Shown here one piece after another: positions 2,221 to 28,695 of a DNA stretch of 64,000 nucleotides. Both the position numbers and the translations under genes were made by a program. The notes under the pieces are model-generated. The model was not told where the DNA came from. It did no database searches and saw only the letters and a program-made list of their open reading frames with translations. The stretch lies in the sequence record NC_041911.1; one strand, written 5' to 3'. Positions within the stretch are counted from its first letter, which is position 1, and the number at the start of each line of letters is the position of its first letter.

Positions 2221-2224
2221 AAAA

Positions 2225-7106: not shown

Positions 7107-7191
7107 GTTTAGTTCACTCCGTTAGGGGCGGCTCATTAGACCGCCCTCTTCTCGGTTTCAAGAATGGAGATAACACAGGCTCTGGTAGGGA

Positions 7192-8793: not shown

Positions 8794-8881
8794 AATTAGT
8801 GTTTTTCTGCGATGTGTGAAAAGTGAGAAGACGATAGGTGGAAAACTCCTACACACTATCGCCTTCCGGGTAAATTCCCCA

Positions 8882-12854: not shown

Positions 12855-15347
12855 ATGAAAATCCTCGAACTCGAACTCGATCTCTACAAGAGGTTGACGA
12901 AGGTGGCGCACATCCGTCACTTCAAGCTGACATTGAAAGAAATCGTGCAGTTGATCTTGGGGACAAATGGTTCGGGCAAAAGCTCTATTCTCTACGAACT
13001 GTCGCCTCTCCCAGCTAACCACAAGGCTTACCATAAAGGTGGTAAGAAGCGTGTCCTGATTGCTCATCAGAACAAGATGTACGAACTCATCTCTGATTTT
13101 GCAAACGGGCAAGACCACTACTTTTATGTTGATGGTGAAAACCTGAACACAGGTCGCACCGTCACCATTCAAAAGGAACTGGTCAAAGAGCACTTCGGTA
13201 TCACGTTTGAGACTCATGAGCTGCTGCTGGGTTACGAGCAGTTCTCCAAGATGTCTCCGGCACGTCGTCGTGAACTCTTTACGATGCTGTGTGTGGTGGA
13301 TTACACCTATGCCATCAAGCTGTACCAGAAAATCCAAGTTGCGATGCGCGACGATGTCGGTACGCTGAAGAACCTCAAGAAGCGCCTGGTCACGGAAACA
13401 GCGAATGCGCTGAAAGACGAAGAGATCACTGGTCTGCGTGTGCGCCTAGCTGAGCTGAATCGCGAATCGCAAGCAATGTACATGCTGCGTAACGCTAATG
13501 CTCAGACCACCTTCGATGCGCGCACGGTAGCTGAAGCCGCCAAGAAGACTATCGATGACCTGTTGCAGAAGTTTCGCTCGGTGCGCTCGATTCTGCGCGA
13601 TAAGTGTTGGATCACGCCAGACGAATATCAGGAAGACATCGACAGTCTGCGCGCTGAACTGCATGGTATCGAAGGTGTCTATGCTCGTGCGTCGGAAGAG
13701 TTCATCAAGGCTTCTTCCGAGGTTGAGCAGGTTTCTGGGCTCGAAGCAGAAGATGTCACCAAGCTGCAAGACGAAATCATCGCTTCGAACAAAAAAGCAC
13801 AGAGCTTGCTGGAGACGCGTAAACGGCCTCTGGAGGGCTTTAAGCCTTTGGCAGCCTCGCAGTCTATGGAACTGGTCTACGAGTCGTTATACAGCGTTCT
13901 AACCGAGCTGCCGGCCGATCCTGAGGGACAAATGTCGTCCCAAGCATTGAGCGAGGTGTCAGAGCGCTTGCGCTTGGTCGAAATGTCGATCAGTGCCAAC
14001 CGCGAGAAGCTGTCTGGTCTCGAACATCGGGAAAAACATCTGGTCGATCTGGCGAGTTCGGAGGACATCAATTGTCCAAAGTGCGAACACTCATTCAAGA
14101 TGGGTTACTCGGTTGGGGAGCACGAATCGATCAAGACGCGTATCGCGGCAGGGCGCAATCACATCGAAGCACTAGGCAAAGAAGCTGCTGCTTTGAAGGA
14201 ACAGCAAGAGCGGCTTAGCAACTACGCCAGTCTTTATAAGGAATACGTGCGCATCACTCGTAACTCGCCAGAACTGCAACCGTTGTGGGATCTGATCGTC
14301 GAGGAAGACGCTCTGCGTCGTTCGCCTCAGCATGCTCTGACGCTGATCGAACTGGTACGCAGCGATCTGCGTATCGAGATGCAGGTAAATGCGATCTATG
14401 AAAAGATTGCGACCGACGATCACCGACTGAAACTCGCACAGTACGCTCAGTCCGAAGCCATCAAGACCAAGAAGCAACGTTTGGAACAGTTGGAACAGGA
14501 AATCGGTCGTCTGTCGAAGCAGAAGGTCTGGGTACAGGGTCGTCTAAGCGATCTGGTTCGCACTCAGCAGCAGATCAAGCACATGTACGAGGTCGGCGAC
14601 CGGATGGCAAAGGCCAAGGAAGAGTTCACCAAAGCTTCCTACGCAATTATCGATGCTGTCAAGAATGAGATCATCGATGAAGCGCTAGCTGAGACTCATC
14701 GCGAGATTGCTACGCTGTCGACGCGTATCCACTCGATCGACCAACACGAGACACTGATCAATGATCTGAAACAGCAGATCCAAAATCACGAGAAATCAGA
14801 AAAGGCTTACAAGGCCTTGGCTGACGCTCTGTCTCCGACTGATGGTCTGATCGCTGAAGGGATGCTGGGCTTCATTCGCAACTACGTGGCGCGGATGAAC
14901 GCACTAATCGCTAAGGTGTGGACGTACAAAATGGAAGTGCATGACTGCTCGACCGAGGACGATTCCGCGGAACTGAACTACAAGTTCCCAGTGACAATCG
15001 GTAACGATCCAGAACCAGTGCCTGATGTTGCTGATAGCTCATCTGGTCAAGAGGAAATGCTGAACCTAGCATTCCGCGTCGTGGCCGCGCAGTGTCTCGG
15101 TCTGGATAAAGGTCCGCTGCCATTGGATGAGTTTGGTAAGACCTTCGATGAAAGCCATCGCGAAGCTGCGACCAACGTCGTGCGTCAGCTGATTGAACAA
15201 CTGAGCTTCTCGCAGTTGTTTATGATCTCGCACTACGAATCGAGCTACGGAGCATTCTACAATGCTCAGATGTCAGTCATCGATAAGCGCAATATCACTG
15301 TACCAGTTAACCGCCGGTATAACGAGTTCACTGAACTAGCAGCATAA
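12855..15347 (+). CDS. sbcC: SbcC/Rad50-like SMC ATPase (phiKZ gp165-like)
   Basis: GTNGSGKS Walker A, long coiled coils, CPKC zinc hook, SSGQ signature, LDEFGKTFD Walker B. Confidence 0.92.
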   Translation: MKILELELDLYKRLTKVAHIRHFKLTLKEIVQLILGTNGSGKSSILYELSPLPANHKAYHKGGKKRVLIAHQNKMYELISDFANGQDHYFYVDGENLNTGRTVTIQKELVKEHFGITFETHELLLGYEQFSKMSPARRRELFTMLCVVDYTYAIKLYQKIQVAMRDDVGTLKNLKKRLVTETANALKDEEITGLRVRLAELNRESQAMYMLRNANAQTTFDARTVAEAAKKTIDDLLQKFRSVRSILRDKCWITPDEYQEDIDSLRAELHGIEGVYARASEEFIKASSEVEQVSGLEAEDVTKLQDEIIASNKKAQSLLETRKRPLEGFKPLAASQSMELVYESLYSVLTELPADPEGQMSSQALSEVSERLRLVEMSISANREKLSGLEHREKHLVDLASSEDINCPKCEHSFKMGYSVGEHESIKTRIAAGRNHIEALGKEAAALKEQQERLSNYASLYKEYVRITRNSPELQPLWDLIVEEDALRRSPQHALTLIELVRSDLRIEMQVNAIYEKIATDDHRLKLAQYAQSEAIKTKKQRLEQLEQEIGRLSKQKVWVQGRLSDLVRTQQQIKHMYEVGDRMAKAKEEFTKASYAIIDAVKNEIIDEALAETHREIATLSTRIHSIDQHETLINDLKQQIQNHEKSEKAYKALADALSPTDGLIAEGMLGFIRNYVARMNALIAKVWTYKMEVHDCSTEDDSAELNYKFPVTIGNDPEPVPDVADSSSGQEEMLNLAFRVVAAQCLGLDKGPLPLDEFGKTFDESHREAATNVVRQLIEQLSFSQLFMISHYESSYGAFYNAQMSVIDKRNITVPVNRRYNEFTELAA

Positions 15348-15350
15348 AAG

Positions 15351-15383
15351 GCCAGGAGGGGAAACCCTCCTGGCTCTTATGCC
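15351..15383. terminator. Bidirectional terminator, identical to 11761-11793
   Basis: Same 33-nt sequence, between convergent genes. Confidence 0.85.
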
Positions 15384-15388
15384 GTTAT

Positions 15389-15943
15389 TTAGACAGCAGG
15401 TGCTGCGTACTCATTGAAACCATTGATGTCAGGATTGCCAATCAATGGCCCGCCTTCCAACCATTCGGTGTTTGGCTTGAAGGTTGTTCCGTTGATCCAG
15501 AGCAGGGACTCCGGATGGGCTTGCAGCCTGAGACCCTTGTAGACATCGTCCAGCGTCAGGTACTCGTAGTCGATTATGTCATCTGCCGCAATCGGATATG
15601 GCAAGATTCTATTAATCTGCTCCAGAACGTCCGAGATCTTGAACGGCAGGTGCGTTGGCGAGACGTGGTGCAGATCACTGTTGCTGACGTGGTTGAGAAT
15701 GCATCGACGGCGATACAGGAAGCCTGAGCCTTTTACCCAGTAACGATCGTCATATTGCTGATCAACCTGACAAGGGATAAACGTATTGGGGTCGGTATCA
15801 AGATCCTTTCGTGGGTCGACCTCTTGCGGTTTTCCGAACTTGACCTTCTCCAGCGGGATAACTTGCCCTGTCGCCTCAAAGATCAAATACAGTAAAACTT
15901 GTTCACGACTCTTACCGACGTCGTGAGCGTCGATAACTACCAT
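15389..15943 (-). CDS. Hypothetical protein, possibly virion-associated
   Basis: 184-aa ORF with AGGAG RBS. Confidence 0.6.
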   Translation of the reverse strand: MVVIDAHDVGKSREQVLLYLIFEATGQVIPLEKVKFGKPQEVDPRKDLDTDPNTFIPCQVDQQYDDRYWVKGSGFLYRRRCILNHVSNSDLHHVSPTHLPFKISDVLEQINRILPYPIAADDIIDYEYLTLDDVYKGLRLQAHPESLLWINGTTFKPNTEWLEGGPLIGNPDINGFNEYAAPAV

Positions 15944-15963
15944 TTATTTCTCCTGAGCGGGCG

Positions 15964-17220
15964 TTAGGTGTTGGGAGTGATCACAACCTTTTCGGACTGC
16001 ACATCCAGGAAGTGGGCGTAGCTGTACGATTCTCGGTTATACGGGATGCGGTTGTCGGCAGGCATCGTAGCCTGACTTGCCGGTGTAGTGTGGAATAGCC
16101 GGTGATGGTAGATGTTGTCACCTACAGTCACCGAAAAGACGCCATCGTCTTCCTGTACCCAGTACGGCCACAGCAGACCGAAACCACCGACGAGCGGTAG
16201 AGACGGTTCGTCAAAAGCCAGATACTGTTTGGCAATTTGGGTAGGCGCCAGTTGTTGACGCTCAACGACCACTTTGGGGCTATCGATGAGAACCAAGAAA
16301 CTTTGAGACATTGTCAACCAGTTGGTCAACACGGCATCACTGTAGAGCTGATCGCGAGAGATCTGAGCATCGTGAGCACCGTTGTACTCCAATCCCAGAT
16401 TCGACATGTCGATCAGTGCGCGGGATTCGTAGAAACGATCCAACAGTGGCACGGACTGAGTGTCCAGACAGAAAATGTCATCCGCAGTGCGGAAGAAGCT
16501 CAAGCCATCCAGCAAGAACAGATAACCACCCATCACCAACGCCACAGTCTTACCCTGAGCCTCAACTGGACTCTTGATAAAGATCTGATTAGCGAACGGC
16601 TGATCGGAATGAGCGCGGAACAGCATATCGGCAGTAATCGTCACACAGGTCAACTCGCCAATGTCTTGGAAGTTGATGATGCCGACTTCATTACGACGGC
16701 TGAGATAATTGCTCTTACCAGCATCGATTACGTAGATGTACTGGCTGTCAGCATCGACACGGTGGATCAGACCGTTGATCGAGACCAAGCAATTCTTATG
16801 GAAAACCCGGGCATCAACACCGGGCTTCGACATGATGAGACAATCTGCCTCATCAGGCTGGGGAATCGTAGTCGGACTTTGCAGATAACGACCGCGCTCC
16901 AGCTGATAACCTGCCCAGTAGGCGTCAGCATACTTGATGCTGCCTTTAGCGATCGAGGCAATGCCGTTAGTCGACGGCAGCGTGTTATTGCCTTGTGCGG
17001 CAAAGAACTGTGCCAGTGTCTGGTCGCGCTGTACGTAGCCGCTGGTGATCTCACCAAAGCGCATCGTACGATCGCTAGTCCAGAATGGATTGCTGACGCG
17101 CAGGTAAACATCCGAATACGCGCTGTCGATTTGAGACAGCGTCAAAGTGCTCAGATCCACCTCAGCCCAAGCTGTCCCGGCGGCCATGAGTTGTGCAATT
17201 GCAGAGACCAGTTGATACAT
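15964..17220 (-). CDS. Probable virion or baseplate protein
   Basis: 418-aa ORF (start MYQLVS) divergent from the tail-fibre genes; aromatic, beta-rich composition. Confidence 0.55.
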   Translation of the reverse strand: MYQLVSAIAQLMAAGTAWAEVDLSTLTLSQIDSAYSDVYLRVSNPFWTSDRTMRFGEITSGYVQRDQTLAQFFAAQGNNTLPSTNGIASIAKGSIKYADAYWAGYQLERGRYLQSPTTIPQPDEADCLIMSKPGVDARVFHKNCLVSINGLIHRVDADSQYIYVIDAGKSNYLSRRNEVGIINFQDIGELTCVTITADMLFRAHSDQPFANQIFIKSPVEAQGKTVALVMGGYLFLLDGLSFFRTADDIFCLDTQSVPLLDRFYESRALIDMSNLGLEYNGAHDAQISRDQLYSDAVLTNWLTMSQSFLVLIDSPKVVVERQQLAPTQIAKQYLAFDEPSLPLVGGFGLLWPYWVQEDDGVFSVTVGDNIYHHRLFHTTPASQATMPADNRIPYNRESYSYAHFLDVQSEKVVITPNT

Positions 17221-17416
17221 GAGAAAACTCCGTAAGAGTGCGTTTTTCCGCTTTTTATGCGGTTTAAAATGGCTCAAATAATGTGATCTACTATTAGGCT
17301 AAGTAGTATTTTTATACGACCAATGCCCTCCGTTCCCACGGCGGAAGGAGGCGGTGGTCCGCGTGGACGTCTTGGCCGACAAGTATTCCGAGACATCATC
17401 AAAGGACGATTGTTCA

Positions 17417-19021
17417 ATGGCTACCGCTTACCAGTATCCGTTCGATCCCAGCGGCACTTCGTCTGCCAACCGGATCTTGAACGAGCAGCATGTCATCACC
17501 GCTGCAAACTTTCGGGATTACCACTACGTAATCCCGAACTTTGCCCCTTTCTTTGAGGGCGACTTCGACATCAAAATGCAGTTTCCTGATGGCTCGATTC
17601 GTCCTCTGACGCAAGGCGTCGACTTCTACTTCTCGAACCAGTTCTTGGACGCTTCGCGTGCCTGTGCGAAGCCTGTCTATGGTTCGATCTCGTTCCTTGA
17701 CACCGATACCGCCGGTATCCTGTCGATCAACTACAACACTGTTGGTGGCGAGTGGAACATCTCGCCGACAGAAATCTCGCGTATCTTGGCCGAAGAGCTG
17801 CGCAACCCCCGTATTACGACCTGGGAACAAATCACGTATTTACCGGAACGTTTCCCGGTAGTCGATCACGCGTGGGATCTGATCGACATGGTGGGTATGT
17901 CTCCGGTTGTGGCTGCCATCGAAGCACTGCGCGACGCGGTTGTGACGAAGAACGGTGGTAACTTCACCGATCACATCAACAACTACTCGAACCCGCACAA
18001 CACCACGGCGGCGCAAGTAGGGTTGGGCAATCTGTTCAACTATCCGATTGCTACGACGGCTGATGCCCAGGCTGGCACGAGTAACTCGTTCTACATGACA
18101 CCCGCGCGTGTCAAGGACGAAATCATGGCATTCGCTACGCCGCTGTCGCACTTGACGGATTACACCAATCCGCACCAAGTGACAAAGACCCAGGTGGGGC
18201 TGAGCAATGTGGCGAACTTCGCAGTTTCGACCACGGCAGAAGCTCAAGCAGGTGCTGTTGATACGTCTTACATGACGCCGCTGAAGACAGCACAAGCCAT
18301 CACGCAGCAGGCCGGTTCAGCGCTCGCAGCTCATGTTGCGAACCAGCAGAACCCGCACAACGTGACGAAAGATCAGGTTGGCTTGTTCAACGTCCAGAAC
18401 TATCCGATCGCTACGCAACAGCAAGCGATGGCTGGTACGGACAACGCCTCGTACATGACGCCGCTGCGCACAGCACAGCTGGTAGCTCAGATCTCTTCAG
18501 TGGCGCTACAGAACCACTTGAATGACTTTACCAACCCTCACCAAGTGACGGCCGGTCAGGTGGGTCTTGGTAATGTGCAGAACTACGGTATCGCTACTCA
18601 GGCTGATGCACAAGCCGGCGTGAGCAATACGCTGTACATGACGCCGGGTCGTGTCGCTGATGCCATCAATGCACTGGCTACGCCGCATGCTCACTTGCTG
18701 GATATGAACAATCCGCACCAAGTGACCGCGGCTCAAGTCGGCGCATACACGACTACTCAGACGGATACGCTGTTGGGTGGTTACGTGCGGCTGACCGATC
18801 AGTGGGTAGCGGGTGAAACCAAAGCTGCCTTCATTGCAGAAGTGCTGCAGGGTACGGCGAACAATGCTTCGATGGTTTACGGTTTCACGGAAGCCCAACT
18901 GGCCGCCGATCTCGAAACCAATTACTTCGATAACGCTTACGCCACCATTGCTGCATTCAATGCATTGGCCCAGCGCGTGACCGACATCGAAACGGCCCTC
19001 AACAGCATCACCGTTGTGTAA
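17417..19021 (+). CDS. Tail fibre / baseplate-attached fibre protein with about 4.5 NPHxVTxxQVGL repeats
   Basis: N-terminal YQYPFDPSG..NRI..E.H domain as in phiKZ-like fibres; tandem ~60-aa repeats NPH.VT..QVGL.NV.NY.IAT...AQAG...YMTP. Confidence 0.8.
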   Translation: MATAYQYPFDPSGTSSANRILNEQHVITAANFRDYHYVIPNFAPFFEGDFDIKMQFPDGSIRPLTQGVDFYFSNQFLDASRACAKPVYGSISFLDTDTAGILSINYNTVGGEWNISPTEISRILAEELRNPRITTWEQITYLPERFPVVDHAWDLIDMVGMSPVVAAIEALRDAVVTKNGGNFTDHINNYSNPHNTTAAQVGLGNLFNYPIATTADAQAGTSNSFYMTPARVKDEIMAFATPLSHLTDYTNPHQVTKTQVGLSNVANFAVSTTAEAQAGAVDTSYMTPLKTAQAITQQAGSALAAHVANQQNPHNVTKDQVGLFNVQNYPIATQQQAMAGTDNASYMTPLRTAQLVAQISSVALQNHLNDFTNPHQVTAGQVGLGNVQNYGIATQADAQAGVSNTLYMTPGRVADAINALATPHAHLLDMNNPHQVTAAQVGAYTTTQTDTLLGGYVRLTDQWVAGETKAAFIAEVLQGTANNASMVYGFTEAQLAADLETNYFDNAYATIAAFNALAQRVTDIETALNSITVV

Positions 19022-19073
19022 CCAACCCATTTAAGGGCGAGGCGGGAGACCGCCTCGTTTGAGCGAACAAGTC

Positions 19074-20351
19074 ATGACTATTCCGATCTATCGCTATCCC
19101 TTGGATGGCACCGGCACCAGCCCGGATAACCTGGTGGTTGGAGAAGAACACCAGCTCTCCAACCGAGCAATTCGTTGCGTAGCGCCGACCTACGGTGGCT
19201 TCTACGCTGAATCCGCAGTGGTGACGGACTTCAACACTGGCGTACCGCTGGTGCGCGGTGTTGACTACTACTTTGGTGAGCTGTTCGAGTTCCCCACTGG
19301 TCGTTACGGTAAGGAAATCTTCGGCCTGATCGTTATCACCAAGCCGAACGTTGCTGCCGTTTCGATCAATTACCAAGCACTGGGTGGTGATTACTCCTAT
19401 TCCATGGACGCAATCATCGCCATGATCGACAACCTGAATCTGGACACGCGTCCGGTGGAATGGGGTGCGATCATTGGTCGTCCGGCGCTGTTCGATCCGG
19501 CAACGCACTGGCACGATGCTGGTGACATCTACGGCTTCGAATACGTAGTGAGCGCGCTGATCGATCTGCGCAACGCCATCCTGACGGGTGACGTGGCCAG
19601 CCACGATGAGATCTATCGCTACATCGATCGCTGGGCAGCTCAGCAGAGCGCGGCCATCCAAGCAGTTTCCGATGCACTGCACACGCACATCGTCGACTAC
19701 ACCAATCCGCACCAAACCACGAAGGCACAGGTAGGGTTGGGACTGGTGTCGAACTTTGCGACAGCGCTGCAAGCTGACATGAATACTGGTACGGCGAACA
19801 ACCTGTTCGTGACGCCAGATATCGTTGCCGCGTACGTGACTCAGCAGGCAGTGAATCCGCTGCTTGCTCACATTGCCGACAAGGGTAACCCGCACCAGAC
19901 TACCGCAGCACAAGTGGGACTGGGTAATGTCCAGAACTATGGTGTTGCTTCCCAGCCGGACATGAATGCCGGTACGCGTGACGACGTCTATCTGACGCCG
20001 CTGAAGGTCGCGACCTATGTGACAAACGTCGCGGTTAACCCGATGAATGCGCACATTGCCAATACCAACAATCCGCATGCCGTGACACAGGCACAAGTTG
20101 GGTTGGGTAGTGTTGCGAACTATCCGGTCGCTACTCAGGCTGAAGCGCAAGCTGGAACGGCTAACAACCGCTACATGACTCCCTGGCTCGTAAACCAAGA
20201 AGTCATGCAGATGCTCAACAACGGTGCATTCGACGGTCGCTATATGCGGTATGGCACCGCCACTGATGGTTCGACCTGGGTTAGCGCTGGTATCGCCTAC
20301 GTGTTCGTATCGGGAGCATGGCGACAGTTCTGGCCGCCTGTGTGGCAGTAA
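19074..20351 (+). CDS. Tail fibre protein, paralogous to the preceding gene, with 3 NPH-QVGL repeats
   Basis: YRYPLDGTG..NLV..EEH N-terminus; three repeats; C-terminal YVFVSGAWRQFWP. Confidence 0.8.
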   Translation: MTIPIYRYPLDGTGTSPDNLVVGEEHQLSNRAIRCVAPTYGGFYAESAVVTDFNTGVPLVRGVDYYFGELFEFPTGRYGKEIFGLIVITKPNVAAVSINYQALGGDYSYSMDAIIAMIDNLNLDTRPVEWGAIIGRPALFDPATHWHDAGDIYGFEYVVSALIDLRNAILTGDVASHDEIYRYIDRWAAQQSAAIQAVSDALHTHIVDYTNPHQTTKAQVGLGLVSNFATALQADMNTGTANNLFVTPDIVAAYVTQQAVNPLLAHIADKGNPHQTTAAQVGLGNVQNYGVASQPDMNAGTRDDVYLTPLKVATYVTNVAVNPMNAHIANTNNPHAVTQAQVGLGSVANYPVATQAEAQAGTANNRYMTPWLVNQEVMQMLNNGAFDGRYMRYGTATDGSTWVSAGIAYVFVSGAWRQFWPPVWQ

Positions 20352-20359
20352 GAGATGTG

Positions 20360-20392
20360 AAAACCACTCCGCCCAAAAGGTGGAGTGGTTTT
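20360..20392 (+). terminator. Terminator after the fibre genes
   Basis: AAAACCACTCCGCC/GGTGGAGTGGTTTT stem followed by TATG. Confidence 0.75.
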
Positions 20393-20426
20393 TATGTCTG
20401 GTGTTATTTGCTAAAAGGAATTTATC

Positions 20427-20804
20427 GTGGCCACCACCTCCTCTACAACCACTGATGTGCAAGGGTATGACATCAATACTCTCCGCAACACAATTAACAG
20501 TGTGCGGGCTCGTATTGCTGCTGGTCAACCCATCAGTGCCAACCAAATCGCTGACCTTGCTTGGGTGTACAACACTTGGATTCAGCATACCCACAACTAC
20601 TACGACTATTACTGGATCGCTTACGGTAATACGTCTCCCTATGGCACCACTGCTGTATGGAAAACTTCTGGCAACGTTGGTGTAGGGTATTTCTCACCAC
20701 CTGGGGCTGGACAAACTGTTCAAGCTGCTCATGTGAATGGCTTAGCGGGTCTGGTCAATGCGATCCGATCCCATACCCACTATTCGCCGGACGGCAGTTA
20801 CTAA
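20427..20804 (+). CDS. Small protein with two GQ-x19-HTH modules (fibre-tip-like)
   Basis: AAAGGA RBS, GTG start; GQ...HTH at aa 33-56 and 95-118. Confidence 0.7.
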   Translation: MATTSSTTTDVQGYDINTLRNTINSVRARIAAGQPISANQIADLAWVYNTWIQHTHNYYDYYWIAYGNTSPYGTTAVWKTSGNVGVGYFSPPGAGQTVQAAHVNGLAGLVNAIRSHTHYSPDGSY

Positions 20805-20887
20805 ACATTCCGTTAGGTAAAAAAGCAAGTGCGTTTTTACCTATCATTCGATTTTTATAGTAATCCATTTCGAGGACGAATCCACCA

Positions 20888-21085
20888 ATGTCCAATTATC
20901 TCTCCACTGTAACAACGGCTGCGGCGCCAGCTAACACTGTGGGGCAAGGCCAAGCGGTACAACCAGCCACGATGAACCAAATGGCTGCTGTACTGGATTC
21001 ATTGCTGAGCCACACGCACGTCTTTTATGACAACTACGGCAGCAACTGCAATTGTAACTGCGCCTGCACCCGAGGATCTCTGTAA
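20888..21085 (+). CDS. 65-aa protein with a GQ-x19-HTH module and NCNCNCAC tail; candidate radical SAM substrate or precursor
   Basis: GAGG RBS; stop overlaps the next start (TAATG); Cys at 54, 56, 58, 60. Confidence 0.75.
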   Translation: MSNYLSTVTTAAAPANTVGQGQAVQPATMNQMAAVLDSLLSHTHVFYDNYGSNCNCNCACTRGSL

Positions 21086-21972
21086 TGAAAACTGTCTTTA
21101 TCAAAAGCGGCGGCTACTACGAAACGCCAGGTGTCGCTGTCTCCGGCGCTATCAACGACGCCTTCGACTTCAACGTGAGTCAGCATTGCCGTTCGAATGC
21201 GCTGTTCATGCTCGACTATGTCAGTCGCGAATACCGCCTCAGCCTTACCGTTGCCTCTGGTGACATGAAAGATGCGTTCGCGCGTCTCGACATGGATCTG
21301 ATCACCAAGGCCGCGGAAGAGCATGGCTTCTCTTATGTCGGCCTGGTGGCTGACGAAAAGGCGATGATGGCTCGCCCGGATGAATTCCTGCGCGACTTGT
21401 CCGTCGTGACCGTCTGCAAGGAAACCGGCAAGTTCCTCGATGCCAAGTCCGGCACCGCTCTGACCGGCAACAACATCACACCGGTGATCTACTGCGTGAA
21501 GATGGCTGACAGCACGTACGCCATGATCCTGAGCCAGATGGCCAACGTGATGCCGAGCATGGTCGACAATCCGAAGGTGGGTCGTGACGACATGAACGTC
21601 ATCGTGGTCAATGACGGCGATGCCATGCGTAGTCAGTTCGTGGACGTCAGCTTCCACGGCGCTACCAAGCATTTCCGCAACAACGACCTCGTTACTGGTT
21701 TCGCAGTGTTTGCTTGGCCGAATGCTCTGATTGAAGTTAATATCTTCAAGGACACGCCGCTCGCCGCTGAGTTCAAGAAGAACTTCGAACTGGAAGTCGA
21801 CAGCAGCTTTGATGCCAAGATCGTCGACGGCAAGGTCGTTATCCAGATGCCGCCTTCGTGTCGCACTGGCTATCTGTCGATCAAGCTGAAGACCACACCG
21901 CTGTACGAAGACGTCTCGTCGCGCGAGATCAAGGAAATGCTTTCGTTCGACTTCATCGTGACGGTTGTTTAA
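21085..21972 (+). CDS. Unknown protein translationally coupled to the Cys-rich peptide
   Basis: 295 aa, strong C-ending codon bias, TAATG overlap. Confidence 0.8.
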   Translation: MKTVFIKSGGYYETPGVAVSGAINDAFDFNVSQHCRSNALFMLDYVSREYRLSLTVASGDMKDAFARLDMDLITKAAEEHGFSYVGLVADEKAMMARPDEFLRDLSVVTVCKETGKFLDAKSGTALTGNNITPVIYCVKMADSTYAMILSQMANVMPSMVDNPKVGRDDMNVIVVNDGDAMRSQFVDVSFHGATKHFRNNDLVTGFAVFAWPNALIEVNIFKDTPLAAEFKKNFELEVDSSFDAKIVDGKVVIQMPPSCRTGYLSIKLKTTPLYEDVSSREIKEMLSFDFIVTVV

Positions 21973-21988
21973 CCACTCCTATTCGAAG

Positions 21989-22015
21989 CCGACAGATGAC
22001 TTGTTCATCTGTCGG
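21989..22015 (+). terminator. Terminator-like hairpin before the radical SAM genes
   Basis: 11-bp stem CCGACAGATGA/TCATCTGTCGG followed by TTTTATGC. Confidence 0.7.
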
Positions 22016-22041
22016 TTTTATGCTCCCATCAGGACACCATC

Positions 22042-23655
22042 ATGCAAGAACAAGTTATCAAAATCCATCGCAAGAAAGAACCCATCGACTTCAAGAAACC
22101 CGGGGAGCGTATCAAAACCATCGCCGAGGTCAAGGACATTCTGTTCGCTGAACTGAAAGTCCTGAACGTGATCCTGACCAACGCCTGCAATCTCTCGTGT
22201 AGCTACTGCTTCGAACAGCACAAACAGGACTACGGCAAGTTCACCCAAGAACAACTGAAGCAAGTGTATGACTTCCTGCTGAACGCCAACACTCAGCCGC
22301 ATCGCCACTTCCAGTTCTTTGGTGGTGAGCCGTTGGCGCAGAAGAAGAAGATCCTCGACTTCTGTCGCGACCACAAGGACGAACTCTCGGCCAACAAGGA
22401 GCAGGTGCGTGTGTCGATCGTGACCAACGCGCTGCTCCTGACACCGGAATTCATCGAGGAATACTGCAGCTACGATTTTACGTCGCTGGTCATTTCTTTG
22501 GACACGGATGATGCCGAGTCGAACCGTCGCGAACTGACGCAAGAGAACATCGACTACATCTTCGAGATGATCAAGCTGTTGCCTGACTCGATGATGCGCG
22601 ATGCTCACCACGTCTCGATTCGTTGCACCATCAACGAAGAGAGCGTACCGCACCTCGATCGCTTCATGGAGCGTCTGTATGCGTCCGGCGTGCGCAATTT
22701 CGTGATCCATCCGCTGATCCTCGCTAAGGATCAAGGCGCCATTGAATGGCAGCCGGGTATGTGGGAGCGGATGTACCATTCACTGCATCAAGCCATGCAT
22801 CGCTGGGACGACTTCAAGATCACCTGGGCCGAAGGCGTGGGTGTGAAAGGCGAGTCCAACTGCATGGTCGGTTCGGACATGATTGCGATGGACGCCTCGG
22901 GTGACTTCAGCGGTTGCTACTTCCTGACCAACCTGAAAGAAACCTACGGCAACACGATGCTCGGCAATCTGTTCCGCGACGAGATCTACATCGATCGTTA
23001 CGTCGAGTTCCAGCAAGCCTATGCCAAGTCGCTGGAACACGAACAGTGCCAGTCGTGCCACCTCAAGAACTTCTGCTACCAGTGCCCGGCTGGTAATGCA
23101 GCTACTGGTGGTTCGCTGTTCCGTCCGGACTCGATGTGCAAGCGCATTGTGGAACTGTTCCTCACTCTGCGTCAGGACTTCAACCGTAAGGCTTTGCTCC
23201 AACAGTTCAAGGAGCTGGAAGAAGCTGTTGTCCAGCAAGGTCCGATTGCTCAGTCTCGTGCAGTGCTGCATTGCATCTACCGCGAGTTCACTGGTGAGAT
23301 TCAGGACAACGCCATCATTGACGCTTATGAAGAACTGCCGGCACCGCACACGCTGCTCTTCATGTTCAAGCAAATGCTGGAAGGCGGTTTGACTAGCATT
23401 CCGCCGCTCGACGTGTGGGTGTCTGGACTACTGCGCCGCAACCCTCGTCCGGAGGAAAGCATCGATCCGTACGAGTTCTACCTGTTCTTGTGCAAGCTAC
23501 GTGGTATCCCGATCGATTTCAAATACACTCCGAATGGTTCTGTTCAAGAGCAGAACTACTTTATCACCCTGACTCACTTGCTGATTTTCGATGAAAGTCG
23601 TTATCTCAGCAAATACGATCCGGAACACAGCCGGTCTCGTATTCTCGACCTGTAA
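22042..23655 (+). CDS. Radical SAM/SPASM enzyme 1 with ~170-aa C-terminal extension
   Basis: CNLSCSYC, FFGGEP, IVTNA; SPASM: NCMVG..GDFSGCYF..LGNL..CQSC.....CYQCP..C. Confidence 0.93.
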   Translation: MQEQVIKIHRKKEPIDFKKPGERIKTIAEVKDILFAELKVLNVILTNACNLSCSYCFEQHKQDYGKFTQEQLKQVYDFLLNANTQPHRHFQFFGGEPLAQKKKILDFCRDHKDELSANKEQVRVSIVTNALLLTPEFIEEYCSYDFTSLVISLDTDDAESNRRELTQENIDYIFEMIKLLPDSMMRDAHHVSIRCTINEESVPHLDRFMERLYASGVRNFVIHPLILAKDQGAIEWQPGMWERMYHSLHQAMHRWDDFKITWAEGVGVKGESNCMVGSDMIAMDASGDFSGCYFLTNLKETYGNTMLGNLFRDEIYIDRYVEFQQAYAKSLEHEQCQSCHLKNFCYQCPAGNAATGGSLFRPDSMCKRIVELFLTLRQDFNRKALLQQFKELEEAVVQQGPIAQSRAVLHCIYREFTGEIQDNAIIDAYEELPAPHTLLFMFKQMLEGGLTSIPPLDVWVSGLLRRNPRPEESIDPYEFYLFLCKLRGIPIDFKYTPNGSVQEQNYFITLTHLLIFDESRYLSKYDPEHSRSRILDL

Positions 23656-23668
23656 GGTAACTTAACCC

Positions 23669-24751
23669 ATGAACTACGATAACATCCAGGACGTCTCGAT
23701 CTATGTGGGTCCTGCGTGCAACTTCAACTGCACGTATTGTGATCGCGCCTACGTAAACAACGTAGGTGTGGATTCTGCTGAATGCGATCCGGCCTTGGTC
23801 GACTTCGTAGTTGATGTGGTGCTGCACTCCGAGCGTCCGATGGTTTCCTTCCACGGTGGGGAACCATTTGTTTACATCAAGACCATGGAGAAGATCATCG
23901 AGGCCGTGCTCGAACGCGTACCAGATTTCAAGGAACGCGGCGCGATCTTCTTCATCCAGACCAATGGCTCGCTGATTACCCGTCAGCGAGCTTTCTTCGA
24001 GAAATACAAAGAGGTGCTCTACGTGAGCATCTCTTACGACTTCAAGTACCAGGGCGATAACCGCACTGCGTACGACATTGACTCAACCCTGCAACTCTTG
24101 AATGATCTGGGGATTGGGACGAACCTGCAATACGTGATTCCGACCTACGACAAGAACGCTTGCGATCACGCAGCGTACTCGGAAGTCATGCGGTTGTTCT
24201 CCAAGTTTAAGCTGGGGCAACTGAACCTGATCCTGTTGCGTCACATTCGGCAGGAAGATAAATTCGAAACAGTGATCGCGGATGAGAGCATCGACCTAAA
24301 GGGATTCTTCCTCGGCTTCATGCGCTTCGTCCAGTTGCTGTACGTCTCAGGTATCAATGTCCACATCGACGGTCATGCCAACAAGATCGATAAGAACTAT
24401 TACAACAACCATAAGCAAATGGTGCTCGCTCCAAATGGCCTGATCGTACCGGAGTACCAGTTCATCGAGTATGATGATTACGATTTCGCTATCGGTCGCT
24501 GGAAGCCTTACGTGGAGATCTCTCGTGATCAGATGCCGGAGAAGGCCGCCAAGAAGATTCGCAAAGAGTGCCAGACTTGTCCGATGGCGGACATCTGTGG
24601 TTTGCGTTATCACTACGCAATGTTCGATATGGACCCGCCAACTCCGCAACGGTGCAAGGAGTTCTACTCTCTGAACCTGATCGCGATCAAGCACCTGTAC
24701 AAACTGAAAGAGCAACCCACCCTTCTCCACCATCTGGGAGTTCAGCAATGA
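23669..24751 (+). CDS. Radical SAM enzyme 2 with partial SPASM domain
   Basis: CNFNCTYC, FHGGEP, IQTNG, ISYD; C-terminal CQTCPMADIC..C. Confidence 0.92.
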   Translation: MNYDNIQDVSIYVGPACNFNCTYCDRAYVNNVGVDSAECDPALVDFVVDVVLHSERPMVSFHGGEPFVYIKTMEKIIEAVLERVPDFKERGAIFFIQTNGSLITRQRAFFEKYKEVLYVSISYDFKYQGDNRTAYDIDSTLQLLNDLGIGTNLQYVIPTYDKNACDHAAYSEVMRLFSKFKLGQLNLILLRHIRQEDKFETVIADESIDLKGFFLGFMRFVQLLYVSGINVHIDGHANKIDKNYYNNHKQMVLAPNGLIVPEYQFIEYDDYDFAIGRWKPYVEISRDQMPEKAAKKIRKECQTCPMADICGLRYHYAMFDMDPPTPQRCKEFYSLNLIAIKHLYKLKEQPTLLHHLGVQQ

Positions 24752-25896
24752 GTCGCGCTATCACGATCGAGAATCCGAAAGAGCACTTCATCCGTTACGA
24801 CGGACTGCTCAACGTCCAGTATGACGTGACGTTTTCGATCTTCAAGAAGTACACCTGTCAAGCCGGGTGCAAGATCTGTTATATCAAGGATGACTTCCTG
24901 CCTAACGAGCAGTTCAAGAAGTATGTCCCGATAGCATCACACGTCAACACGCAGAGCTACGGCGACCGCCTGCTAGAATTCCTGTCATACTTTCAGATGG
25001 CAGCAATCATCGACGACCTGTACTTTGTGCGGGAAGAACATCCGGAGCTGTACAAGTTCTATCAGGAGTATAGCGAGGCCTTCTGGCTGAGTTCCATGAC
25101 GGACAACGCAGTGTTCCGTCACCTGCCGATTATTGAGGATGACCTTCGTGTCGTCGGTCTACGGGAGATCTCGCTCTCCGAGGAATTCTTGTATAAAGTC
25201 AACCAAACGAAGTTCTTTAACGCACTGGATAAAATTCAGAGGCGCGCTAAGATATTGAAAATAAAGGTAATACTGTCGGGTCTCCCTGGCATCGCGATTC
25301 GTGGCAACGATTTGATGCTCTGGTGTCAGAACAATCAAGTGCTCCTAGAGAAGCAATACGAGCACGGTGTTGAGCCGAATGGCCGCAGCTTCCTGTCTCA
25401 GTTGCCGAACACGCGTTACAGCGATCGCAGCCAGGAAACGCACTTCACTGAAGAGATCACCTACAGTGAGAATTCTGGTGAGATGCTGTACCCAATTCAC
25501 TCTGAGTCGATCTTCTTGCAGTACGATGACTTCTACTCGGAGCTGAAGTCTGCCACGCGTGAAGACCGCAGTGCGCCGTTTGCCAAGCTGGATGATTTTG
25601 TCCAGAGTCCGCAAGGCTTCTTGGCTAAGGTGCTGGAAGGTAAGCTGACGGATTACCGCAAGTATGCTTCGTGGATGCAGAACAAAGATCACGACTACTT
25701 CCGTTACTTTGACTATGTGGCGAATAACGTGGTAGTCAATCATGACTTCAACTTCATCCCGCGTATCGCTCTGCGGCCAGATAGCGTGTACTATCACAAG
25801 CTGATGGAACACACGAAGCTGGTGGATACCCAATACGGGCTCGTGGATTCTGCCGCGAGCAAGGTCGTTCCAATTTACTCTTTCAGAGAACAATGA
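24748..25896 (+). CDS. Divergent radical SAM-like protein 3 (no GGEP, no SPASM)
   Basis: CQAGCKIC motif near the N-terminus; ATGA overlaps at both ends; start reassigned to MSRAIT. Confidence 0.7.
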   Translation: MSRAITIENPKEHFIRYDGLLNVQYDVTFSIFKKYTCQAGCKICYIKDDFLPNEQFKKYVPIASHVNTQSYGDRLLEFLSYFQMAAIIDDLYFVREEHPELYKFYQEYSEAFWLSSMTDNAVFRHLPIIEDDLRVVGLREISLSEEFLYKVNQTKFFNALDKIQRRAKILKIKVILSGLPGIAIRGNDLMLWCQNNQVLLEKQYEHGVEPNGRSFLSQLPNTRYSDRSQETHFTEEITYSENSGEMLYPIHSESIFLQYDDFYSELKSATREDRSAPFAKLDDFVQSPQGFLAKVLEGKLTDYRKYASWMQNKDHDYFRYFDYVANNVVVNHDFNFIPRIALRPDSVYYHKLMEHTKLVDTQYGLVDSAASKVVPIYSFREQ

Positions 25897-27152
25897 GCAT
25901 AAGCACATTCCGAATCGAGAAGTCGGGTGAAGTGTTTGGTTACGACAACACACTGAACTCGATCCTCGATGCAAACAACCAGCCTGTGGGTCGAGCTTCG
26001 TCTCTCCTGGCTCAGGCTCCGTCGTTCGAGAAATCGAATACTCCTACCACCATCAAGGTACTGCTCGGGCACGCCTGTAACTACAGCTGCAGCTACTGCG
26101 TACAGAAGGACATCGGTAATCCGGCTGAACGTCCGAAGAACATCATGACCAAGGAGTTGATCAAGAAGATGCGCGCGCATCTCGATCTCTCCAACGTCAC
26201 GCGGATTGAACTGTGGGGCGGCGAGACGCTGCTCTACTGGCCGGATATCGTTGAGATCATCTCAGCACTGGATCGGGAAGGCATTACGTGGTACATCCCG
26301 ACCAACGGTACGATCCTGCGGATGAAGCACGCTGAGTTCTTCCGCCAGATGAAAGGCGAGATGACCATCGGCATCAGTCACGACGGTCCGGGTCACGTAT
26401 CGCTGCGTGGTCCGGAGTTCCTGCATCGCAAGATCGATGAGTTGGGTGCGCTGCAAGACGCCAAGGTACGGTTCAGCTTCAACGCTGTGATCAGTACCAC
26501 GAACTACGATCTGTTTGCCATCGATGACTACTTCCGCTTCTTCCTGCTCAAGGCAGACCTCGATCACGTAGGGCTGGGCTTCGAGCTGGGGCGGACGTAT
26601 GAGACGGGTGCTTGCGCTACCGAGTCGCACGTGATCACACTGGAGCAGATCCCGCACTATCGGTCGATTCTGAAAGCGTATCTCAAGCACCATCTCGATG
26701 CGTTCAAGAAAGGTCAAGCGCCGGAAGACATCGATGCCGATACTCGACTGTTCAACAGCCTGTTCCATTTCAGCAATGGTGTGATTCCGTACGCGAAGTC
26801 GCTAGTTCAGCAAAGCCCCATTCGCTATTACAGCAACTGCGGCACTGATGATCCGAACCTGATCACGCTGGACATGAATGGCGCTATCCGCGTTTGTCAG
26901 AACACGGACGAGAGCTACATCTACGGCAACGTTGCTAATATCGGCGCTGCTAAGATGCAGAAGGTCGATTACAGCAAGAACGACTTCTGCAAGGACTGCT
27001 CGGTTTTGCGGCTGTGCAATCGTAGCTGCCCGATCGAACTGCCATACGAAACCTTTTTGACCAACCACCATATCGAGAACGCTCACTACAGCGAGATACA
27101 ACTCTCGGCGTTTGAGTTGTTGTTCGATAGCCCTATCACCAAAGTGAACTGA
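25893..27152 (+). CDS. Radical SAM/SPASM enzyme 4
   Basis: CNYSCSYC, LWGGET, PTNG, ISHDG; SPASM: NCGT..GAIRVCQ..YGNV..CKDC.....CNRSCP. Confidence 0.93.
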   Translation: MSISTFRIEKSGEVFGYDNTLNSILDANNQPVGRASSLLAQAPSFEKSNTPTTIKVLLGHACNYSCSYCVQKDIGNPAERPKNIMTKELIKKMRAHLDLSNVTRIELWGGETLLYWPDIVEIISALDREGITWYIPTNGTILRMKHAEFFRQMKGEMTIGISHDGPGHVSLRGPEFLHRKIDELGALQDAKVRFSFNAVISTTNYDLFAIDDYFRFFLLKADLDHVGLGFELGRTYETGACATESHVITLEQIPHYRSILKAYLKHHLDAFKKGQAPEDIDADTRLFNSLFHFSNGVIPYAKSLVQQSPIRYYSNCGTDDPNLITLDMNGAIRVCQNTDESYIYGNVANIGAAKMQKVDYSKNDFCKDCSVLRLCNRSCPIELPYETFLTNHHIENAHYSEIQLSAFELLFDSPITKVN

Positions 27153-27160
27153 GAAAACTC

Positions 27161-27997
27161 ATGTCCGACATTCTTGACCGTTTTGTCCTGCCCGAAACTG
27201 CAGCCCAAGTTACCGAGCTGCGCGCCCAGCTGGACGCGATGAAGAACCATCGTGTCTTCGGTATGGTGAAAACCATCGACGACCTGCAAACCTTCATGTC
27301 GCTCCACGTCTACGCCGTGTGGGACTTCATGACGCTGGCCAAGCGCCTGCAGTGCGAGTACACCGGCATCAAGTTCCCGTGGGTGCCGCCGCGCCTCCCC
27401 AAGGTCGCCCGTCTGATCAACGAGATCATCCTGGCCGAAGAGTCCGACGACAACGGTGAGGGCGGTACTTGCAGCCACTTCGAACTGTACGCCATGGCCA
27501 TGCAAGAAATCGGTGACATCGACATGGAGTCGCTCGAAGCATTCGTAACGAACCTTCGTTACGGTATCCCGCCGGTGGAATCTGCTAACCGTGCACTGAT
27601 CAAGGCCGATCCGGAGTTCCGTGCGACTGTCACCAACTACATCGGCGATACTACTGCCGTGGCTCGCACTGGCCTGCCGGAAGAAGTGCTGGCCTACTTC
27701 GTCTTTGGTCGTGAAGATTCGATCCCGGCGATGTTCAGCAACCTGCTTGAGCAGATGGGTGATCTGGCTGCCAAAGCGACGACCTTCACGTACTACTTGA
27801 AGCGCCATATCCAACTCGACGGTGAAGACCACAGTGTCAAAGCTGCTGAGATGCTGTCGCTCGAACTGGAAGGCAATCCGATTCGCACGCGCACCGCACT
27901 GATCGCTGGTATCAATGCCGCCAAGTCCCGCATTGCTTTGTGGGATGCGATTGCTGCGAAGCTGGAAGCAACTCAAGCAGCGACGGCAACTGCCTAA
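27161..27997 (+). CDS. DUF3050 / heme-oxygenase-like diiron (HDO superfamily) protein
   Basis: FMSLHVYAVWDFM.L.K.LQ, RLINEIILAEESD, SHFELY..AM, FGREDSIP.MF, YYLKRHIQLDGEDH: DUF3050 signature with E/H diiron ligands. Confidence 0.85.
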   Translation: MSDILDRFVLPETAAQVTELRAQLDAMKNHRVFGMVKTIDDLQTFMSLHVYAVWDFMTLAKRLQCEYTGIKFPWVPPRLPKVARLINEIILAEESDDNGEGGTCSHFELYAMAMQEIGDIDMESLEAFVTNLRYGIPPVESANRALIKADPEFRATVTNYIGDTTAVARTGLPEEVLAYFVFGREDSIPAMFSNLLEQMGDLAAKATTFTYYLKRHIQLDGEDHSVKAAEMLSLELEGNPIRTRTALIAGINAAKSRIALWDAIAAKLEATQAATATA

Positions 27998-28018
27998 TCG
28001 ACTCACGACGGCATAAAG

Positions 28019-28047
28019 GAGAGTAGAGGCCAGACGGCCTCTACTCT
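28019..28047. terminator. Bidirectional terminator closing the radical SAM cluster; same 29 nt as 2225-2253
   Basis: GAGAGTAGAGGCCAGACGGCCTCTACTCT flanked by GGCATAAA and TTATGT. Confidence 0.85.
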
Positions 28048-28695
28048 TTATGTCGCTATTTTGTCATACTCCGCTAGGTCGATACGGAAGCCATCTTCCA
28101 ATGCGCCATAAGCAACGCGCATGAACAATTGGAAAGTGATGTGATCGAGCACTTCCACTTTGAACAACGGCTCGACTATCTTCTTGATGCGTTCCGGTAA
28201 GCGATAATCCATAACGTCTTCGAAAGCTGAGTTCAGAATGCGCCGGCGCACCGGATCAGCAAACTTCCGATAGCCATCAATCACCTTACAATAGCGGATG
28301 AAGGGCTGTACTACAGAAGGAGCCACCCGTCGGAAGAGATGTGTATTGTAGATCTCTTCAAAGTAGGAAAGTTCATTCTCCGTAAATAGCTGCCGGGGGA
28401 AGGTGATACGGCGCCAATACAGTAGGCACTTGTTGTGTCCCATGACATGGAAGTAGTGCGGCAGAATATCGTACGGGTCCCGGATGATCTGCTCAAAAGC
28501 TTCTTGCGGGATAATCGTGCAGAGTTCTGGAACGTCGTAGCTCTCCAACTCTGCTTCCGGTACAGCGATCAGCTTGTATCCATCCAAGCCAGAGAGAAAG
28601 AAGTCATGGTCATCAATCAAGACTGCTTCCACGAGTTCAGGGAGCTGCTTGAGATACTCCACAGCGATGGCGTTCAATTCTTCGATAGTTTTCAT
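28048..28695 (-). CDS. Hypothetical protein
   Basis: 215-aa ORF from MKTIEE; visibly more AT-rich than core genes. Confidence 0.6.
   Translation of the reverse strand: MKTIEELNAIAVEYLKQLPELVEAVLIDDHDFFLSGLDGYKLIAVPEAELESYDVPELCTIIPQEAFEQIIRDPYDILPHYFHVMGHNKCLLYWRRITFPRQLFTENELSYFEEIYNTHLFRRVAPSVVQPFIRYCKVIDGYRKFADPVRRRILNSAFEDVMDYRLPERIKKIVEPLFKVEVLDHITFQLFMRVAYGALEDGFRIDLAEYDKIAT

Follow-up and report, generated by a model that had tools for sequence, protein, structure and literature searches.

The analyzed window, a 64,000-nucleotide stretch of record NC_041911.1, is 100% identical to the Ralstonia jumbo phage RP12 (window position 20427 corresponds to record position 82427). Behind its tail-fibre genes lies a conserved and uncharacterised set of genes, all on the + strand, with the following features in window coordinates:

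17354-19021 (+), fibre-like gene 1 (ORF072; the record starts it at window 17417)
19059-20351 (+), fibre-like gene 2 (ORF073; the record starts it at window 19074), ending in a G-x-W-R-Q-x-W-P-x-x-W motif
20353-20399 (+), strong terminator-like hairpin followed by a T-run, between fibre-like gene 2 and the module (dG -32.8, z -8.5)
20427-20804 (+), p125 (ORF074), a 125-aa protein with two helix plus HxHxxxD modules
20888-21085 (+), p65, a 65-aa protein missing from the GenBank record, with one helix plus HxHxxxD module and a C-terminal tail of alternating Cys; the likely substrate
21085-21972 (+), p295 (ORF075), a 295-aa partner protein with an alpha/beta domain plus an Ig-like sandwich and no known fold relative
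22042-23655 (+), rs1 (ORF076), a radical SAM enzyme with a full SPASM Cys pattern, CteB/PapB-like
23669-24751 (+), rs2 (ORF077), a radical SAM enzyme with four conserved C-terminal Cys (twitch-like)
24748-25896 (+), rs3x (ORF078), a protein with an invariant CX3CX2C but no detectable radical SAM homology beyond that loop
25893-27152 (+), rs4 (ORF079), a radical SAM enzyme with a SPASM-type CX2CX5CX3C plus two further conserved Cys
27161-27997 (+), a DUF3050/HamA-type haem-oxygenase-like protein (ORF080), an accessory member
28018-28049, a 14-bp hairpin between convergent genes at the end of the module (dG -25, z -5.8)

The gene run described in the first-pass annotation is real, including the ATGA overlaps at 24748-24751 and 25893-25896, but some details needed correction. 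The 65-aa protein does not end in NCNCNCAC, as five more residues (TRGSL) follow. Of the four CxxxCxxC proteins, all of which had been taken for radical SAM enzymes, only three reach the Pfam threshold, and the second hairpin, listed as a terminator, has only a weak T-run.

The two fibre-like genes hit PHROG 2163 at E values of the order of 1e-145 (3e-145 and 7e-145, respectively) in addition to many tail-fibre PHROGs. Fibre-like gene 1 is an orthologue of RSL2 ORF064, and fibre-like gene 2 has homologues in 439 phage records. Its C-terminal motif recurs next to the module in 8 of 14 loci but is also found in phages without the module and is therefore not specific to it.

The p125 and p65 proteins are homologous (hhalign E 8e-6 between p65 and the p125 module), which had been missed previously, and share the helix plus HxHxxxD module in two copies and one copy, respectively. 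In p125, H54, H56, D60, G67, H118, and D122 are invariant over 50 sequences, and the second module is followed by only 3-5 residues. The p125 family comprises 267 representatives at 50% identity, and its AF2 model (pLDDT 83.4) gave no PDB fold match. Some p125 relatives carry adhesin-type additions, namely a Gly_rich_2 insertion (49.7 bits), beta-sandwich-like extensions (weak hits only), and an auto-processing Hint domain. The p65 protein belongs to a family of at least 304 unnamed clusters, and the 120 listed hits all carry HxHxxxD plus an invariant tail with 5 or 6 alternating Cys, usually C-N-C-N-C-N-C-x-C followed by [TSG]-R-G, whereas the N-terminus is variable. The X in CXC is N 356 times, A 78 times, and D 26 times.

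The ATG of p295 overlaps the TAA of p65 by one base in RP12. Among 16 uninterrupted loci, an overlap of 1 or 4 nt occurs in 9 and a gap of at most 34 nt in the rest, but a GIY-YIG homing-endonuclease gene splits p65 from p295 in two loci, so tight coupling is not obligatory. p295 is fast-evolving and apparently non-enzymatic, with 13-20% identity among distant orthologues and about 5 invariant residues.

The CX3CX2C motif near the N-terminus is invariant in all four proteins over 14 orthologues each. rs1, rs2, and rs4 exceed the Pfam Radical_SAM (PF04055) gathering score (71.8, 43.1, and 41.9 bits against 29.5), and hhalign connects rs2 to rs1 and rs4 at E 4e-13 and 3e-16. Over the same orthologues, rs1 has 8 extra conserved Cys (full SPASM pattern), rs4 has 6 (CX2CX5CX3C plus two), rs2 has 4 (CX2CX5C..C), and rs3x has none. 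The assignment to the SPASM/twitch subfamily rests on this conserved pattern, as the Pfam SPASM hit for rs1 is below threshold (16.6 against 21.5 bits). rs3x returned no Pfam, NCBIfam, or PDB hit, its hhalign matches to rs1, rs2, and rs4 cover only 14-30 columns at a probability of 2-15%, and a conserved DD stands where the others have the GGE SAM-binding motif; it cannot be shown to be a radical SAM enzyme.

rs1 is closest to the thioether-forming maturases PapB (NCBIfam E 4e-36, model positions 2-327 of 330) and CteB (PDB 5wgg residues 96-419, E 2.5e-18), in both cases through the radical SAM and SPASM regions. All enzyme scores are, however, far below the equivalog cut-offs (PapB 125 against 340, SCIFF maturase 69.9 against 425), the alignment of rs1 begins after the RiPP recognition element (RRE) of CteB, and no PqqD-type hit was obtained for any protein of the module. 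The DUF3050 protein matches PF11251 over residues 27-264 (230.8 against 22.2 bits, E 2e-68) and PDB 9vwb (E 3e-50). It had been presented as part of the pathway, which is overstated, as it is present in only 6 of 18 loci and in varying positions.

The order p125, p65, p295, rs1, rs2, rs3x, rs4 never changes in 18 distinct loci, with rs1 identity down to about 42%, an arrangement far beyond chance. Loss of the Cys-rich ORF from orthologous enzyme clusters had been named beforehand as grounds for rejection, but all 18 clusters that could be read retain it. Many environmental jumbo phages share the module, and fibre or baseplate genes flank it where flanks were examined, across unrelated jumbo-phage contigs with very different fibres. 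In one contig, it lies inside a baseplate-fibre operon; in locus L040, it follows Phage_base_V, PAAR, gp25, a 1090-aa fibre, and a DUF4376 (Tfa-like) gene. The exception is locus L023, a MAG scaffold binned as Bdellovibrio, which has the whole module with bacterial-looking flanks and no fibre gene. No peptidase, transporter, or immunity gene was found in the conserved set or in the annotated flanks of five loci (L022, L024, L038, L039, and L040).

The closest phiKZ-like relatives, the RSL2 group and the Pseudomonas jumbo phage pPa_SNUABM_DT01, were not considered in the first-pass annotation. They keep the orthologous fibre pair but carry a different radical SAM cluster in the same slot (RSL2 ORF066-072; PA10_00059-67), itself uncharacterised. 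It contains SPASM-type enzymes and a protein whose C-terminus is a Cys repeat followed by R-G, but the components are not orthologous (best pair 23% identity, E 3e-7), the Cys spacing is CxxxC with His, a cupin is added, and both the HxHxxxD module and p295 are missing.

Virion LC-MS/MS of RP31 identified 32 proteins, among which ORF68-76, covering the fibre-like proteins, p125, p295, and the enzymes, were absent (PMC5468394, Table S3), although this gel-band survey was shallow and p65 was not in its database. There is nothing to show that the product is a virion fibre-tip subunit, as had been proposed, and the invariant core speaks against a role as a specificity determinant. The interpretation in the first-pass annotation is only partly supported: a multi-enzyme post-translational pathway centred on the Cys-rich mini-protein and a conserved link to fibre genes are supported, while the chemistry and the virion location are unproven.

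We favor, with moderate confidence, an essentially phage-specific maturation module built around two homologous small proteins. What the sequences establish is the shared HxHxxxD module, the invariant Cys tail of p65, the close spacing of p65 and p295 where no homing-endonuclease gene intervenes, and the fixed order of the four CX3CX2C proteins. The chemistry is inferred from sequence alone: rs1, rs2, rs4, and perhaps rs3x would install several cross-links on the Cys tail, most likely thioethers from Cys sulfur to a carbon of the neighboring Asn/Asp, as CteB, PapB, NxxcB, and QhpD do. Likewise inferred is that p295 and/or the shared HxHxxxD module probably presents the substrate, since none of the enzymes has an RRE, and that DUF3050 is an optional tailoring oxidase. 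The three HxHxxxD strands, two from p125 and one from p65, may come together around a metal ion, an idea that rests on sequence register alone. In this view, the product stays protein-bound as a rigid, cross-linked part of a tail-fibre or adhesin-associated complex and is not released as a diffusible peptide, and phages may use peptide natural-product chemistry to mature a tail-associated protein.

In the ranthipeptide/SCIFF systems (PapB with PapA, CteB with CteA), the substrate likewise has a C-terminal Cys-rich core, as does p65 with Asn/Asp next to each Cys, but here four CX3CX2C proteins replace the single maturase, the core is invariant with Cys at every second position, no RRE, protease, or exporter is present, and the system is phage-borne and linked to fibre genes. 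Cross-linking of proteins rather than short peptides has precedents. In Methanococcus voltae, the SPASM enzyme CrpC installs ranthionine cross-links on the Cys-rich protein CrpA encoded beside it (PMC13692751), which is the logic proposed here, although that system is archaeal, uses a single enzyme with an RRE and a different substrate family, and has no virus or fibre context. QhpC, the small Cys- and Asp-rich gamma subunit of quinohaemoprotein amine dehydrogenase, receives several intramolecular thioethers from QhpD and remains a subunit of a protein complex. rs1 hits the QhpD model at E 1e-20 over the N-terminal half only (73.8 against 453 bits), and the neighbors are fibre and phage genes, with no dehydrogenase subunit, QhpG-type flavoprotein, or periplasmic export genes. 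The enzyme NxxcB is named in PMC11851443. Asn is the acceptor partner of Cys in NxxC motifs, which makes the C-N-C repeats plausible thioether sites, but Asn is adjacent to Cys in p65 rather than at i-3, and no NxxcB model was among the listed hits. HxH metal sites occur in trimeric phage fibres and spikes (T4 gp37 and gp12, P2 gpV), and p125 and p65 resemble these in having HxH on a beta-strand directly after a helix in a fibre gene neighborhood, but no sequence or fold match to any fibre structure was found. In those sites, six His from three strands surround a metal on the fibre axis, whereas here only the motif and its 2 + 1 copy number are seen.

A conventional diffusible RiPP is an unlikely alternative, in which p65, and perhaps p125, would be precursors with the helix plus HxHxxxD region as a leader recognized by the maturases or by p295, and the cross-linked C-terminal peptide would be cut off and released during infection, for example as a bacteriocin, a signal, or a superinfection-exclusion factor, with fibre adjacency reflecting only a cargo hot spot. 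The layout is precursor-like, with a small ORF with a C-terminal Cys-rich core upstream of SPASM enzymes, the motif shared by two putative precursors resembles a leader, L023 lacks fibre genes, and no component was seen in RP31 virions. Against this, the leader-removal, export, and immunity functions are missing from the conserved set and the annotated flanks, the nearly invariant core and variable N-terminus are the reverse of antibiotic RiPPs, nothing is left to modify after the second p125 module, and the fibre or baseplate context holds in the loci examined.

It is more doubtful that p65 is a metal- or iron-sulfur-binding protein, or the precursor of a redox cofactor in the way PqqA and MftA are, with the in-register His, Asp, Tyr, and Cys side chains binding metal or being converted to a cofactor, DUF3050 as the oxidase, and a product serving the chemistry of the phage rather than the tail structure. 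The invariant core is typical of cofactor precursors, CXC repeats and HxH are classic metal ligands, all on one face in an i, i+2 register as read from the sequence, and a recurrently linked haem-oxygenase-like oxidase recalls PqqC. However, DUF3050 is absent from 12 of 18 loci, no dehydrogenase or other cofactor-using enzyme is conserved beside the module, four maturases are more than PQQ- or mycofactocin-type pathways use, and the fibre context is left unexplained.

Least likely is that the enzymes act on the fibre proteins, p125, a sugar or lipid of the host envelope, or nucleotides, with p65 as an accessory, such as a cluster-donating or regulatory protein: although rs3x and p295 have no assignable function, the RSL2-type cluster adds a cupin, and the radical SAM cores also resemble viperin, MoaA, and anSME at the domain level, the viperin and MoaA matches cover only the generic N-terminal half (viperin model positions 1-112 of 257; NCBIfam 63.6 against 180), the SPASM and twitch domains and the best full-length matches point to peptide maturases, the Cys-tailed ORF is never lost in the 18 loci, and an analogous Cys-repeat tail appears in the non-orthologous RSL2-type cluster.

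The sequence is 100% identical to Ralstonia phage RP12, a phiKZ-related jumbo phage of Ralstonia solanacearum, with window base 20427 corresponding to record base 82427, and is also 100% identical to RP31 over the region searched. The run of open reading frames described in the first-pass annotation is present on the + strand, and the observation therefore holds, whereas the accompanying interpretation of a multi-enzyme post-translational modification pathway acting on a possible fibre-tip subunit is only partly supported. The features are as follows.

17354-19021 (+), fibre-like gene 1
19059-20351 (+), fibre-like gene 2
20353-20399, hairpin (z -8.5)
20427-20804 (+), p125, a 125-aa protein
20888-21085 (+), p65, a 65-aa protein
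21085-21972 (+), p295, a 295-aa protein whose ATG overlaps the TAA of the p65 gene by one base
22042-23655 (+), rs1, a CxxxCxxC protein
23669-24751 (+), rs2, a CxxxCxxC protein linked to rs3x by an ATGA overlap
24748-25896 (+), rs3x, a CxxxCxxC protein linked to rs4 by an ATGA overlap
25893-27152 (+), rs4, a CxxxCxxC protein
27161-27997 (+), DUF3050 protein
28018-28049, hairpin (z -5.8)

Both bounding hairpins are real and far stronger than shuffled controls. A weaker AT-rich hairpin followed by a T-rich stretch lies between p125 and p65 at 20814-20843 (fold of 20800-20890: dG -16.3, z -2.5) and may attenuate transcription. The conserved p65 gene is missing from the GenBank and RefSeq annotation of RP12 and RP31, where the record leaves a 280-nt gap between ORF074 and ORF075. 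The longest ORFs of the two fibre-like genes start at 17354 (GTG) and 19059 (TTG), upstream of the ATG starts used in the record (17417 and 19074). No tRNA genes were found in the window.

Three of the four CxxxCxxC proteins, rs1, rs2 and rs4, pass the Pfam Radical_SAM threshold, are paralogues by hhalign (E 4e-13 to 5e-7), and match PHROG 1802. Through its SPASM region, rs1 aligns to the PapB model (E 4e-36) and to the solved SCIFF maturase CteB (5wgg, E 2.5e-18), although both scores are far below the equivalog cut-offs and the CteB alignment starts only after the N-terminal recognition domain of CteB. Fourteen orthologues of each enzyme were compared for conserved Cys beyond the CX3CX2C motif, of which rs1 keeps eight, rs4 six (including CX2CX5CX3C), rs2 four, and rs3x none. 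The fourth protein, rs3x, has no Pfam, NCBIfam or PDB relative, a profile search against PDB sequences gave nothing significant, and it matches its neighbours only over the cluster loop, so that a divergent paralogy with rs1, rs2 or rs4 is not demonstrable. The first-pass annotation counted it as a fourth radical SAM enzyme, which remains an inference from the motif and from a conserved DD placed where the others have GGE. Membership in a defense or viperin family was considered and rejected. The DUF3050 assignment is unambiguous (PF11251, E 2e-68; PDB 9vwb, E 3e-50). The fibre-like genes match PHROG 2163 and many tail-fibre PHROGs and have homologues in 439 phage records.

The two small proteins are related. 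BLAST and profile-profile comparison (hhalign E 8e-6) show that p65 carries one copy and p125 two copies of a module of about 35 residues, consisting of an amphipathic helix followed by HxHxxxD. Among 50 p125 relatives, the only invariant residues are these His and Asp positions plus one Gly. The AF2 model of p125 (pLDDT 83.4) places the HxH segments on beta-strands after helices, and searches with this model gave no PDB or BFVD match better than E 1e-4. Profile searches of p65 and p125 against PDB sequences likewise gave nothing significant. In p65, the strand continues into the Cys tail, and, as read directly from the sequence, the two His, the Asp, a Tyr and all the Cys fall in the same i, i+2 register, which is one face of an extended strand.

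A search with the peptide found 16 IMG/VR loci, and further loci came from Logan, ENA and JGI assemblies and one from a scaffold binned as Bdellovibrio, giving 18 distinct loci after removal of duplicates. Scans of genome contigs and metagenome contigs with the peptide profile were swamped by low-complexity CNCN pattern matches and returned only one and three true loci, respectively. All 18 loci keep p125-like, p65-like, p295-like (one or two copies), rs1, rs2, rs3x and rs4 genes in this order, with rs1 identity falling to about 42% and p295 identity to 13-20%. DUF3050 as a core enzyme was rejected, as it is present in only 6 of the 18 loci, at varying positions and orientations. In contig L003 it occurs twice, as two tandem copies (15118-15924 and 15851-16732) following rs4. 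No peptidase, transporter or PqqD-like protein is present in the module or in the annotated flanks.

The p65 family comprises at least 304 clusters at 90% identity in a collection of 5.8 billion proteins, many of them on contigs of 150-380 kb, and none of the 120 listed carries a functional name. All 120 listed hits have HxHxxxD followed by five Cys (111 cases) or six (9 cases). The residue between Cys is Asn 356 times, Ala 78 times and Asp 26 times, and the last Cys is followed by [TSG]-R-G and two more residues. The RP12 peptide is two residues shorter and has four Cys. The N-terminal half of p65 is variable, whereas the C-terminal half is nearly invariant. The p125 family has 267 representatives at 50% identity.

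The AF2 model of p295 is confident (pLDDT 86.8, pTM 0.85) and predicts an alpha/beta domain plus a C-terminal Ig-like sandwich. Fold searches of PDB and BFVD with this model gave no match better than E 1e-4 apart from RP12's own entry, with only a generic Ig-like C-terminal domain showing up. The family is very divergent, with about five invariant residues, which fits a binding or scaffold protein better than an enzyme. In 9 of 16 uninterrupted loci, the p295 start overlaps the p65 stop by 1 or 4 nt, and the gap is at most 34 nt in the rest. In two related contigs, a GIY-YIG homing-endonuclease-like gene on the other strand is inserted between the two genes and breaks their overlap (L003, 7890-8951, minus strand; L022, 8957-9913, minus strand).

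Fibre or baseplate genes flank the module in the loci whose flanks were examined, with one exception. RP12, L003 and L022 have YomR-like fibre pairs, other loci have unrelated fibre families that hit tail-fibre PHROGs, and in locus L040 the module follows Phage_base_V, PAAR, gp25, a 1090-aa fibre and a DUF4376 (Tfa-like) gene. The exception is L023 (NCGL01000045.1, the MAG scaffold binned as Bdellovibrio), where the whole module at 1971-9326, including DUF3050 on the opposite strand, is flanked by ORFs that look like bacterial lipoproteins and secreted proteins and no fibre gene is present, so that either the scaffold is misbinned or this is a cellular copy. Some p125 relatives carry additions that are usual in adhesins and self-processing fibre proteins. 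The L003 orthologue (6412-7572) has an insertion of about 230 aa between its two modules that matches Pfam Gly_rich_2 (PF21722, 49.7 bits), others have beta-sandwich-like extensions (weak hits only), and some (P0356, P0267; locus L006, 8620-9978; locus L039, 8312-9979) are fused to a C-terminal Hint (intein-like) domain directly after the second HxHxxxD module, which suggests self-cleavage that would leave an activated C-terminus.

The slot behind the fibre pair is variable among relatives. FLC4-3B, which has the closest fibre 2 (62% identity), has no radical SAM cluster there, and Xanthomonas RTH11 has a tail assembly chaperone there. In RSL2 (NC_028950.1, 8180-14714) and Pseudomonas phage pPa_SNUABM_DT01 (MW735835.1, 8611-15422), as well as in RSF1, FLC6 and FLC8, a different cluster occupies the slot, in RSL2 and pPa_SNUABM_DT01 behind orthologues of the RP12 fibre pair. 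It comprises a cupin, SPASM-type radical SAM enzymes, and a 178-186-aa protein ending in a C-H-x-S-C-H-x-S-C-H repeat plus R-G-R-R, and the same tail protein occurs in RSF1, FLC6, FLC8, FLC4-4C and RsoM3USA. Two non-orthologous pairings of radical SAM enzymes with a Cys-repeat tail in the same slot is the strongest indirect argument that this chemistry serves the fibre apparatus. Against a structural role, the published RP31 virion proteome (32 proteins, from gel bands) contains none of ORF68-76 (PMC5468394 Table S3).

The analysis itself establishes the gene set and its conservation, the enzyme classes (for rs3x by motif only), the homology of p65 and p125, the near-invariant Cys tail, and the lack of an RRE, protease and exporter in the module and annotated flanks. 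From these we infer that the SPASM and twitch enzymes cross-link the tail, with Cys-to-Asn/Asp thioethers the most likely product by analogy with CteB, PapB, NxxcB and QhpD, and that p295 and/or the shared module present the substrate. The three HxHxxxD strands may form one metal site, as in trimeric fibres, and the product would remain protein-bound in a fibre-associated complex. We consider radical SAM modification of p65 likely, whereas the whole statement, including the protein-bound, tail-associated fate, is only somewhat more probable than not. Of the alternatives, a diffusible RiPP is unlikely but survives best, and a metal-binding or cofactor-type product is less likely still. That the enzymes act on another substrate is the least likely.

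A more far-reaching and tentative possibility is that jumbo phages use RiPP-type radical chemistry to mature a virion protein. In this view, a small subunit with several radical-SAM-installed cross-links, and a His/Cys metal site shared with p125, would form a rigid knot in a tail-fibre or adhesin complex, and at least two non-orthologous versions (RP12-type and RSL2-type) would have been recruited to the same slot behind the fibre genes. This would be the first enzymatically cross-linked structural peptide described in any virus particle, and there is a realistic chance that p65 is the first radical-SAM-matured virion component.

Radical SAM/SPASM maturases are known from bacterial and archaeal peptide natural products and from a few protein substrates. 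As inferred here, the system would work like ranthipeptide or QhpC-type maturation and like the recently described protein cross-linking by CrpC (PMC13692751), but it does not belong to any of those families, because it fails the score cut-offs and lacks the RRE and the partner genes. What differs is that this enzyme kind appears as a fixed set of three confirmed enzymes plus a fourth CX3CX2C protein, with an unusual, near-invariant putative substrate that has Cys at every second residue, on phage or phage-like contigs in all cases but the Bdellovibrio-binned scaffold, and tied to tail-fibre and baseplate genes. The set is also widespread, as the at least 304 peptide clusters show. Literature searches found only annotation-level mentions of these genes, and none found the system described. 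If the product is part of the tail, this opens a new chapter in how phage adsorption organelles are stabilised, and if it is released, it is a new phage-borne RiPP class. Either way, the module defines several new protein families (p65, p125, p295 and rs3x) and new substrates for enzymology.

The C-terminal motif of fibre 2 (G-x-W-R-Q-x-W-P; 20319-20351) was initially taken as a marker of the module, but this was rejected because it also occurs in Klebsiella FBKp24 and Serratia Totoro, which lack any radical SAM cluster, and this too speaks against the structural reading. In these two phages, the motif, in the form G-x-W-R-x-x-W-P, recurs as tandem copies at the start of a separate 176-aa protein (L033, 9348-9878; L034, 9351-9881), and it also occurs as a 90-aa mini-protein in loci L012, L016 and L040.
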